Positions 4,330 through 5,480 of a DNA stretch of 64,000 nucleotides are shown here, piece after piece. Every line of letters begins with the position of its first letter. Positions within the stretch are counted from its first letter, which is position 1. Source of the stretch: Oculina patagonica (lineage: Eukaryota); contig NC_135770.1 of NCBI RefSeq assembly GCF_052425735.1, positions 37,758,001 to 37,822,000 of the forward strand. Reading direction: 5' to 3'. The notes below the pieces were generated by a model that was not told where the DNA came from, ran no database searches, and worked only from the letters and a program-made list of their open reading frames with translations. A program made the translations under genes and the position numbers.

Positions 4330-5480
4330 CTATCGCCACCCCGAGCTCTTCATGCATTTCTTGTAATCCCTGAATCCAGAGCAACTCAAACCAAATGGTA
4401 CAAGGCAATACGAACTGTAAGGTTTCTTCTTGCAACACAGGTCGTGTTCGTAACAGCCCCGATGCCAGCAACAGTCGCCACAAAACCAGCTCCAACACGA
4501 ACACCCTCTGCCGCACAATCCGCGGCAGTTATTTGCCGTGGGCTTTGTGCAGCCCCGCTTCTGCCTGTTGCCGTACTGCCCAGCGATGTCGTCCTCGAAG
4601 CCATGCGCAGCTTTAAGCTCGGGTGGGGTCTCTACATCTGATGCCTTTAGTAAATTGAAGCACAGGGAGTAAAATGGCTTGAGAATTTCCAAACGCGTGG
4701 AGTTGCTCCCCAGCGCCTCTGACACTCGCTCCAGTAGCTGAATTTCTGGAGCATAGTGCAGCTCGCTCATGGCTTCTTCGTAGTGGTTTTTCAGGGCTTC
4801 GTGTTCTGCCATTCCTTTCTGTCGTCTCAAAAAGGCTCGCAGCGCCTCTGGTGTTCTGGGGACATCGTTGGGGACATAAACCATAGAAGCGCCATTCCTG
4901 AAGAACAAAACAAATGAATAGTCAATTGGTTGATACAAAATGTCGACATAATTCAATTTTCCTCCTTCTTAGTTTTCATTAGTGTATGATAGTACTATTA
5001 TCGGAGAGTTTCTGTTATTTCTAAGACTATGAAATCGATGCTCTTCAATTTGGCCTCATTTTCAACCCTGGCTAAAAACATGACGAGCCTTACTCGAAGT
5101 TCACGATAAATGGTGCGATACTGAACCGTAGCTTCCATACTGAAAATATTTTATAAATCTTGGTAAGGTTTCAGTTGCATATCAATAATCATGCTTAAAT
5201 AAATCGACAGCATTGCTTACCCAACAAAAGCCTGATCCAAAACTTGGTAGAACAACATTTCAGGGCCAAGTTTCTTGTAAAGCACAATTTGTTCTCCTGT
5301 GGTCTTCATTAACTTCATGAAGCCTTCGCTGATATCGAAGCAAACGCCCAGGGTTTGATTATGGATGTAACATCCTTCGACTTCATCTTCCGAATAACTC
5401 TTCAAGTGAAGTGCTCGGTCCCCAGAAGTAGCTGTAATAGAGAGCAGAATAGCGACGAAGCTTGGAAGCATGAATCTCAT
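4330..5480 (-). CDS. Secreted Cys-rich peptide precursor, paralogue A; exons 5480-5221 and 4897-4330; 275 aa
   Basis: Signal peptide MRFMLPSFVAILLSITATS; phase-2 intron GG|gtaagc...ttcttcag|G joins ORFs 5217..5480 and 4330..4956 in frame; RQKR followed by a 74-aa, 14-Cys domain (4554-4333). Confidence 0.9.

Follow-up and report, generated by a model that had tools for sequence, protein, structure and literature searches.

The stretch of DNA analyzed here, 64,000 nucleotides of the coral Oculina patagonica (contig NC_135770.1, positions 37,758,001 to 37,822,000 of the forward strand; hereafter, the window), has a guanine–cytosine (GC) content of 39% and carries on its minus strand three intact tandem paralogues, designated genes A, B, and C. 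Each gene consists of two exons with no internal stop codons. The encoded proteins share a common order of elements: they start with a hydrophobic signal, continue with a part that has two N-glycosylation sequons, and end, after an RQKR site, in a 74–76-residue domain with 14 Cys. They represent an undescribed family of exported proteins. In this family, a signal peptide, lipoprotein-type in most of the bacterial members, precedes an eight-strand beta domain and a helical domain; a linker then leads to a C-terminal domain of ~70 residues with 12–16 Cys. Members are found in stony corals, in sponges, and in bacteria, the last mainly Myxococcota. The features of the three genes are as follows, in window coordinates.

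5221–5480, minus strand: gene A exon 1, an open reading frame (ORF) with the start codon, encoding the hydrophobic signal peptide and the larger part of the beta-rich domain; GTAAGC donor at 5220–5215
4330–4897, minus strand: gene A exon 2, encoding the helical domain, linker, and Cys-rich domain; stop codon at 4330–4332; AG acceptor, phase-2 junction
4555–4566, minus strand: gene A RQKR furin-type dibasic site
4333–4554, minus strand: gene A C-terminal Cys-rich domain, 74 amino acids (aa), 14 Cys, net charge +8
4504–4515, minus strand: gene A CGRG, mature residues 14–17
4432–4455, minus strand: gene A CYEHDLCC, mature residues 34–41 (His37, Asp38)
11871–12148, minus strand: gene B exon 1
8899–9460, minus strand: gene B exon 2, including the stop codon; RQKR at 9130–9141, Cys-rich domain at 8902–9129
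9079–9090 and 9007–9030, minus strand: gene B motifs CGKG and CYEHDLCC, respectively
15411–15700, minus strand: gene C exon 1
13701–14277, minus strand: gene C exon 2, including the stop codon; RQKR at 13932–13943, Cys-rich domain at 13704–13931
13869–13880 and 13797–13820, minus strand: gene C motifs CGKG and CYEHDRCC, respectively

The joined exons encode proteins of 275 aa (A), 279 aa (B), and 288 aa (C). Their introns, with lengths of 323, 2410, and 1133 bases, respectively, have GT–AG borders and interrupt the same codon in phase 2. The gene A exon 2 translation is 100% identical to the "hypothetical protein ACROYT_G042603" (P0001) of O. patagonica, and the product of the joined gene A exons is identical to P0001 except for three extra N-terminal residues. 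Gene B matches P0016 (LOC144635639) at 100%, its joined exons reproducing the NCBI model, while gene C matches P0069 (LOC144634461) at 99.5%. The segment at 4333–4554 comprises exactly the gene A residues between the RQKR site and the stop codon. At least six paralogues of the family are located on the Oculina chromosome of the window, three of them within the window itself. In other corals, full-length proteins of 266–285 aa are encoded on contigs of ~1.0–1.1 kb. Since these contigs are too short to contain the intron, they represent spliced transcripts, and the expression of the family is thereby shown.

The ratio of nonsynonymous to synonymous substitution rates (dN/dS) among genes A, B, and C was 0.13–0.38 in every region with an estimable dS, and the three genes are under purifying selection. 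For the Cys-rich domain, the A–B pair gave a dN/dS of 0.30, and dS was saturated in the pairs with gene C. Between A and B (4333–5480 vs 8902–12148), the dS of 0.99 in the Cys-rich domain was approximately threefold higher than the values for the signal/beta (0.26) and helical (0.34) parts, and dN climbed together with dS in this domain. This contrast suggests either gene conversion homogenizing the 5′ two-thirds of the genes or a mosaic history of their 3′ end.

A profile search of 1.84 billion representative sequences yielded 608 clusters (50% identity) at E ≤ 1e-3, and the listed matches mostly span the whole architecture. The named members are all annotated as "uncharacterized" and originate from Acropora, Pocillopora, Orbicella, Desmophyllum, and Oculina, as well as from the homoscleromorph sponge Corticium candelabrum. 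Metagenome assemblies of the sponge Mycale hentscheli contain a further member, whose contigs are AT-rich and have a low density of ORFs. No family model for any member was found in NCBIfam, Pfam, or PADLOC. A search of published papers for the gene identifiers and motif strings found none, and the motif was absent from the supplements of the Oculina skeleton proteome paper.

Scanning of one bacterial or archaeal genome per species provided 44 confirmed loci, mostly in metagenome-assembled genomes (MAGs) of Myxococcota (Kofleriaceae, Haliangiales, Nannocystales, and Polyangiaceae; GC 0.63–0.76; contigs up to 4 Mb). The other loci were found on Acidobacteriota chromosomes, in Burkholderiales and Thermomicrobiales, and in the isolate Mesorhizobium helmanticense CSLC115N. 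For the bacterial proteins (~255–390 aa), the full-length tblastn matches and the alignment indicated the same three-part layout. A lipobox-like signal was detected in 25 of 39 bacterial members, and most Myxococcota members have ~12 Cys in the C-terminal domain. In a rough neighbor-joining tree, the bacterial clade was placed apart from an animal-type clade, within which the corals were monophyletic.

Several members depart from this general picture. One locus, L016 (CBDHDT010000038.1, MAG: Ekhidna sp.), was set aside, leaving 43 confirmed bacterial loci; its GC of 0.39, long-ORF cover of 0.20, and animal-type 16-Cys member suggest that a eukaryotic contig had been binned with a bacterial MAG. 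On two Acidobacteriota chromosomes (L043 and L048), the Cys-rich H-D module resides in longer proteins, the former with an N-terminal DUF3624 match and the latter with 29 Cys and a further Cys-rich C-terminal extension. Five proteins from outside the window, for which the nearest named relative is a Corticium sponge protein (P0080, P0092, P0116, P0122, and P0147), contain a Trp/Phe/Arg-rich run between the dibasic site and the first Cys. Some coral members have a Trp-rich run at the extreme C-terminus instead. This run looks like a movable membrane-seeking tail.

Residue conservation was evaluated in a coral-dominated alignment of 92 homologues and in a divergent set of 128 representatives, mostly 20–30% identical to gene A. 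All of the invariant columns of the family are located in the C-terminal domain, its most conserved part, and none in the N-terminal part. In the coral-dominated alignment, the His of the H-D motif was present in 88 of 88 sequences and the Asp in 84 of 88. The divergent set retained His37 in 126, Asp38 in 123, and the C-G pair in all 128 sequences, with a constant Gly12-to-His37 spacing in 115. The second Gly of C-G-x-G was found in only 62 of the 128, and a third Gly is absent. Among the bacterial members, H-D is present in 39 of 39, C-G-x-G in 36, and the Asp27/His31/His37/Asp38 tetrad in 33. Besides the Cys residues, those kept from bacteria to corals are Gly12, Gly15, Trp21, Gly26, Gly33, Asp27, His31, His37, and Asp38 (gene A mature numbering). 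By these counts, the conservation of H-D is far beyond chance.

Covariation was analyzed by mutual information with the average product correction (MI-APC), using 265 unique domains with an effective number of ~180. Asp27–His31 was the top-ranked pair, and the joint change to Asn/Asn occurred in 8 sequences, in comparison with ~1.3 expected. Cys40–Cys67 was the fourth-ranked pair, and Cys40 and the last Cys were lost together in several members. From this pattern we infer a Cys40–Cys67 disulfide, which would tie the H-D helix to the C-terminal segment containing the last short helix. Additionally, the flanks of the C-G-x-G loop (positions 11 and 17) covaried with helix positions 39, 42, and 43, consistent with packing of the loop on the H-D helix.

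The AlphaFold model of the domain alone (68-sequence alignment; mean predicted local distance difference test score (pLDDT) of 72) contains one substantial helix at residues 32–43, three short helices, and one beta bridge. After the H-D helix, only the short helices 48–51 and 64–69 follow. The full-length gene A model reached a pLDDT of 80.8 and a predicted template modeling score of 0.77. In this model, the beta domain, consisting of eight strands, has a pLDDT of ~95, the H-D helix corresponds to residues 230–241 (pLDDT ~88), and residues 220–270 have pLDDT values of 80–88, while residues 213–215 of the C-G-x-G loop fall below 50. The initial annotation had proposed to check whether H-D is conserved in homologues and lies on a helix near the C-G-x-G loop, and the residue counts, the two models, and the loop–helix covariation all agree with these expectations. 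A Foldseek comparison of the full-length model with the PDB gave nothing better than E 0.2 and a template modeling (TM) score of 0.17; the DnaK substrate-binding domains and TipC2 among the matches represent noise. The N-terminal fold is thus a confidently predicted one without a solved relative.

The RxKR site at the start of the Cys-rich domain is well conserved in the coral-dominated alignment, with Arg at P1 in 89 of 90 sequences, Lys at P2 in 81 of 90, and Arg at P4 in 73 of 89. Among the divergent animal-type members, a dibasic site is present in the linker of 63 of 118 and the full RX[KR]R in 40. In bacteria, a gene with a Pfam Trypsin domain is located directly downstream, on the same strand, in 21 of 39 loci. 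At L009, nine bases separate the stop codon of the family gene from the start codon of the protease gene. The His, Asp, and Ser motifs are readable in the translation of this protease. The coral RxKR site and the bacterial downstream protease are two independent lines that point to proteolysis between the helical and Cys-rich domains. The "mature domain" of the initial annotation is only partly apt: the RxKR site belongs to the coral branch, and the family is a three-domain protein that is also bacterial.

The bacterial neighborhoods showed further regularities. A gene for a sigma-54 activator of the FHA–AAA+–HTH type is adjacent in 17 loci. The trypsin-like protease of L009 (3688–4782 of that locus) and its equivalents in 20 other Myxococcota loci have a Cys-rich C-terminal extension of their own, and at the end of these proteases a hydrophobic stretch precedes an Arg-rich tail, an arrangement resembling a membrane anchor. 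A PADLOC scan for anti-phage defence systems returned no match for the family, and only marginal matches of the protease to protease-containing models.

We favor the interpretation, to which we assign slightly less than an even chance, that the family proteins are protease-processed secreted precursors with an Asp27/His31/His37/Asp38 centre. The precursor would be cut in the linker, in corals by a furin-type convertase acting at the conserved RxKR and in Myxococcota by the trypsin-like serine protease encoded directly downstream. This cut would free or unmask the Cys-rich domain, a predicted disulfide-stapled module around one helix carrying His37-Asp38 and tied to the C-terminal segment by Cys40–Cys67. 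Because the four polar residues are kept from bacteria to corals and Asp27 and His31 covary, we propose that Asp27, His31, His37, and Asp38 form one functional centre. This centre probably binds a metal or catalyzes a reaction, and it might employ a metal ion or acid–base catalysis on an extracellular or membrane-surface target.

Several points weigh against this interpretation. The confidence of the domain model is moderate (pLDDT 72), dropping to less than 50 in the C-G-x-G loop. Roughly one-half of the divergent animal-type members lack the linker dibasic site. The adjacent protease is absent in 18 of the 39 bacterial loci, so processing may not be universal. The MI analysis was made without a phylogeny correction, and in a 70-residue domain most segments are close anyway. 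The conserved His and Asp residues could be structural, serving in helix capping or buried salt bridges. Finally, the 12–16 Cys together with His could bind metal by thiolates instead of forming disulfides.

The initial annotation had suggested that the domain carries a miniature motif pair of the secreted phospholipase A2 (sPLA2) type. The pair is indeed present in all three paralogues, as LCGRG, LCGKG, or MCGKG followed by GCYEHDxCC, in which the His is located 23 residues after the Cys of C-G-x-G. To assess chance occurrence, the 74 domain residues of gene A were shuffled 2,000,000 times: C-G-x-G alone occurred in 17% of the shuffles, C-x-x-H-D-x-C in 0.28%, and both at a PLA2-like spacing in a fraction of 7.6e-5. 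The frequency of C-G-x-G alone marks it as a weak motif for a domain so rich in Cys and Gly. The motif pair is rare for one domain, yet a coincidence could occur across thousands of Cys-rich families.

The likeness to sPLA2s (groups I, II, V, and X, and the atypical group III, group IX conodipines, and group XII) includes the small size, secretion, and many disulfides of the domain, the placement of C-G-x-G ahead of C-x-x-H-D-x-C at a similar distance, the near-invariant H-D on a helix, and the Cys after H-D tied to a C-terminal helix. In classical sPLA2s, a C-terminal helix is likewise linked to the Cys after H-D, and the signature includes a Cys-Cys doublet before x-x-H-D, a Tyr at position His+4, and a second active-site Asp on a third helix that runs antiparallel to the H-D helix. 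The present family differs from this signature. The residue before the Cys of C-x-x-H-D is Gly in 116 of the 128 representatives, yielding Gly-Cys in place of the Cys-Cys doublet, and position His+4 is Cys in 128 of 128, not Tyr. No conserved acidic column follows Asp38, in line with the earlier remark that the second catalytic Asp has no evident equivalent, and the covariation partner of Asp27 is His31 rather than His37. Animal members vary at the second loop Gly, the domain has one long helix in comparison with three in sPLA2s, and it is attached to a 200-residue beta-plus-helical part without a PLA2 counterpart.

The database comparisons likewise provided no sequence, profile, or fold match to PLA2. 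The window family proteins had no Pfam matches at E ≤ 1. In the Pfam listing for the 128 members, PLA2 families were absent, and each listed family matched two members at most. PDB chains were searched at E ≤ 10 with three profiles and, by phmmer, with one sequence; no PLA2 chain was returned. Foldseek found nothing in the PDB for the domain model at E ≤ 0.001 and eight weak matches at E < 10, three of which were pancreatic PLA2s (3elo, 3p2p, and 2phi; E 6.4–9.3, probability 0.01 or lower, TM 0.18–0.19, and root-mean-square deviation (rmsd) of 9.5–12.2 Å, for a model with a pLDDT of 72). These matches probably arise from the amino-acid term of the Foldseek score, given the Cys-rich sequence, rather than from the fold. 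The viral-protein library BFVD gave no PLA2 or other match with Foldseek. The reduced PLA2 fold put forward by the initial annotation thus gains no support from the Pfam, PDB profile, and Foldseek comparisons or from the single long helix. Membership in the PLA2 superfamily was rejected on the Pfam, PDB (phmmer and three profiles), and Foldseek results, and was retained as a low-probability functional analogy. The likeness lies at the level of the motifs and of the order of the elements (the loop, the H-D helix, a hairpin, and a short helix disulfide-linked to the Cys after H-D), and is an analogy at best. This order is that of a PLA2 in miniature, but in a domain of 70 residues with seven disulfides proximity has little power to discriminate. 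A two-motif PLA2 resemblance, though perfectly conserved, gave neither fold nor family membership.

Could the domain nevertheless be a true, highly reduced Ca2+-dependent sPLA2? In such an enzyme, the C-G-x-G loop and Asp38 would hold calcium, His37 would activate water, and Asp27 or the cleaved-off part would replace the contribution of the missing third helix. The sPLA2s have 5–8 disulfides, a His/Asp dyad, and a Ca2+ loop, and atypical groups, such as III and XII, share with the other sPLA2s only the catalytic site and the Ca2+ loop (PMC11594849), a point in favor. Conodipines are cut into two disulfide-linked chains (PMC12027567), which echoes the processed precursor of the present family. 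The constant spacing of the motif pair, the near-invariant H-D on a helix, the linkage of the Cys two residues after Asp to the C-terminal short helix as in classical sPLA2s, and the covariation of the loop flanks with the H-D helix would all fit, as would the aromatic-rich domain, the Trp-rich tails in individual sequences, and the presence of pancreatic PLA2s as three of the eight weak Foldseek matches. The structural scores of those matches (TM 0.18–0.19, rmsd 9.5–12 Å, probability 0.01) count against it, however, together with the failure of the Pfam and PDB searches to retrieve any PLA2, the presence of the second loop Gly in only 62 of 128 representatives, the Gly in place of the first Cys of the doublet, and the Cys instead of Tyr at His+4. 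The absence of a conserved acidic residue after H-D, the single long helix, and the pairing of Asp27 with His31 rather than His37 argue in the same direction, and we regard a genuine sPLA2 as distinctly unlikely. A broader version, in which the family represents a new minimal class of secreted His-Asp hydrolases (a further PLA2 group, or a different interfacial esterase) that are produced as precursors for protease activation and came to be shared by Myxococcota and early-branching animals (sponges and stony corals) through ancient inter-kingdom transfer, is a similarly long shot.

The remaining explanations assign other roles to the Cys-rich domain. The effector could instead be the N-terminal beta and helical part, membrane-active or pore-forming as in the gasdermin–protease systems known from bacteria, fungi, and animals, with the Cys-rich domain as an inhibitory or targeting piece removed by the protease. 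The layout of a beta-rich N-terminal part followed by helices resembles that of gasdermins, activation by cleavage of the linker between the helical and Cys-rich domains is plausible, and a trypsin-like protease gene adjoins in the bacterial operon (21 of 39 loci). Furthermore, the N-terminal fold is confidently predicted without a PDB match, and gasdermin-B was the best PDB profile match of two alignments over the beta/helical region, although not significantly (E 0.34–6.7). That HMMER alignment was gappy, with a posterior accuracy of 0.65; the gasdermin family was absent from the Pfam listing for the 128 members and, for the full-length model, from the 50 listed Foldseek matches. A gasdermin identity was rejected, the evidence (E 0.34–6.7) being too weak to accept. 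The family members carry secretion or lipoprotein signals and are exported or lipid-anchored, unlike the cytosolic gasdermins, which also lack a Cys-rich C-terminal domain, and the invariant columns are all in the C-terminal domain. We consider an N-terminal effector improbable. Somewhat less improbable, yet still unlikely, is that the domain is a non-catalytic binding module (a cytokine-like ligand, an inhibitor of the neighboring protease, or a cationic antimicrobial peptide in the case of gene A), in which H-D serves as a structural or contact element. The precursor-like organization with a dibasic site, the tandem gene arrays (six or more paralogues on a single Oculina chromosome), and the protease gene adjoining in bacteria would suit such a module, and the gene A domain has a charge of +8 in comparison with −7 for the pro-part, the coral domains being mostly cationic and Trp-rich. 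Furin-processed Cys-rich precursors in corals include the antimicrobial peptide damicornin and the SCRiPs. Their organization is analogous: a signal peptide, an acidic pro-region, a dibasic site, and a Cys-rich C-terminal product, with tandem families in Scleractinia. In the present family, by contrast, the pro-part is not a short spacer but comprises two conserved, folded domains, the product contains 14–16 Cys and an invariant polar tetrad, the charge is not conserved, and the distribution reaches sponges and bacteria. A hand count gave charges of approximately −1 for the gene B domain and −5 for that of gene C, and the family-wide median was −2, with 63 negative and 43 positive domains; the antimicrobial-peptide reading was rejected on this lack of charge conservation. 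In canonical inhibitor and ligand families, the cysteines are kept and the surface polar residues vary, whereas the present family retains four polar residues in both bacteria and animals. In addition, the A–B dN/dS of 0.30 in the domain does not correspond to the diversifying pattern usual for toxins and immune effectors. Least likely of all, in our estimate, is that the Cys and His residues bind metal clusters, in a metallothionein-like or copper/zinc-storage-like manner, and form no disulfides. The C-x-C, C-C, and C-x-x-C spacings, occurring together with a conserved His, and the odd Cys counts (13, 15, and 17) in some members would be compatible with such clusters. However, the signal peptides export the proteins into oxidizing compartments, AlphaFold predicts a defined helix-containing fold, and cysteines are lost or shifted in pairs, as for disulfide partners.

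If the processed-precursor interpretation holds, a large family (at least 608 clusters at 50% identity) without a Pfam, NCBIfam, or PDB model would connect bacteria, predatory ones among them, with reef-building corals and sponges. Its proteins would be candidates for a new secreted enzyme or a metal-binding effector with a role in the defence, microbe interactions, or extracellular matrix of corals and sponges, and the family would offer a clean case for studying how genes were exchanged between bacteria and early animals. As a kind, secreted, proteolytically processed, disulfide-rich proteins are known; what is new is this fold family, which has no described relative.

The rest of the window contains several other elements. 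Beyond gene A at lower coordinates, a 577-aa ORF on the plus strand (283–2016) has a LicD-family match (Pfam PF04991, E 9.4e-07), and is a putative phosphocholine or other sugar-phosphate transferase-like gene. A tandem array at 17458–18509, composed of ~10.8 copies of an 87-base unit with an 82% match and also describable as four copies of a 261-base unit, yields long spurious ORFs on both strands. Two ordinary coral genes are located on the minus strand: a single-ORF protein with MOLO1/TPM and RING-finger domains (43948–45135) and an ORF of the TB2/DP1/HVA22 family (60065–60742).

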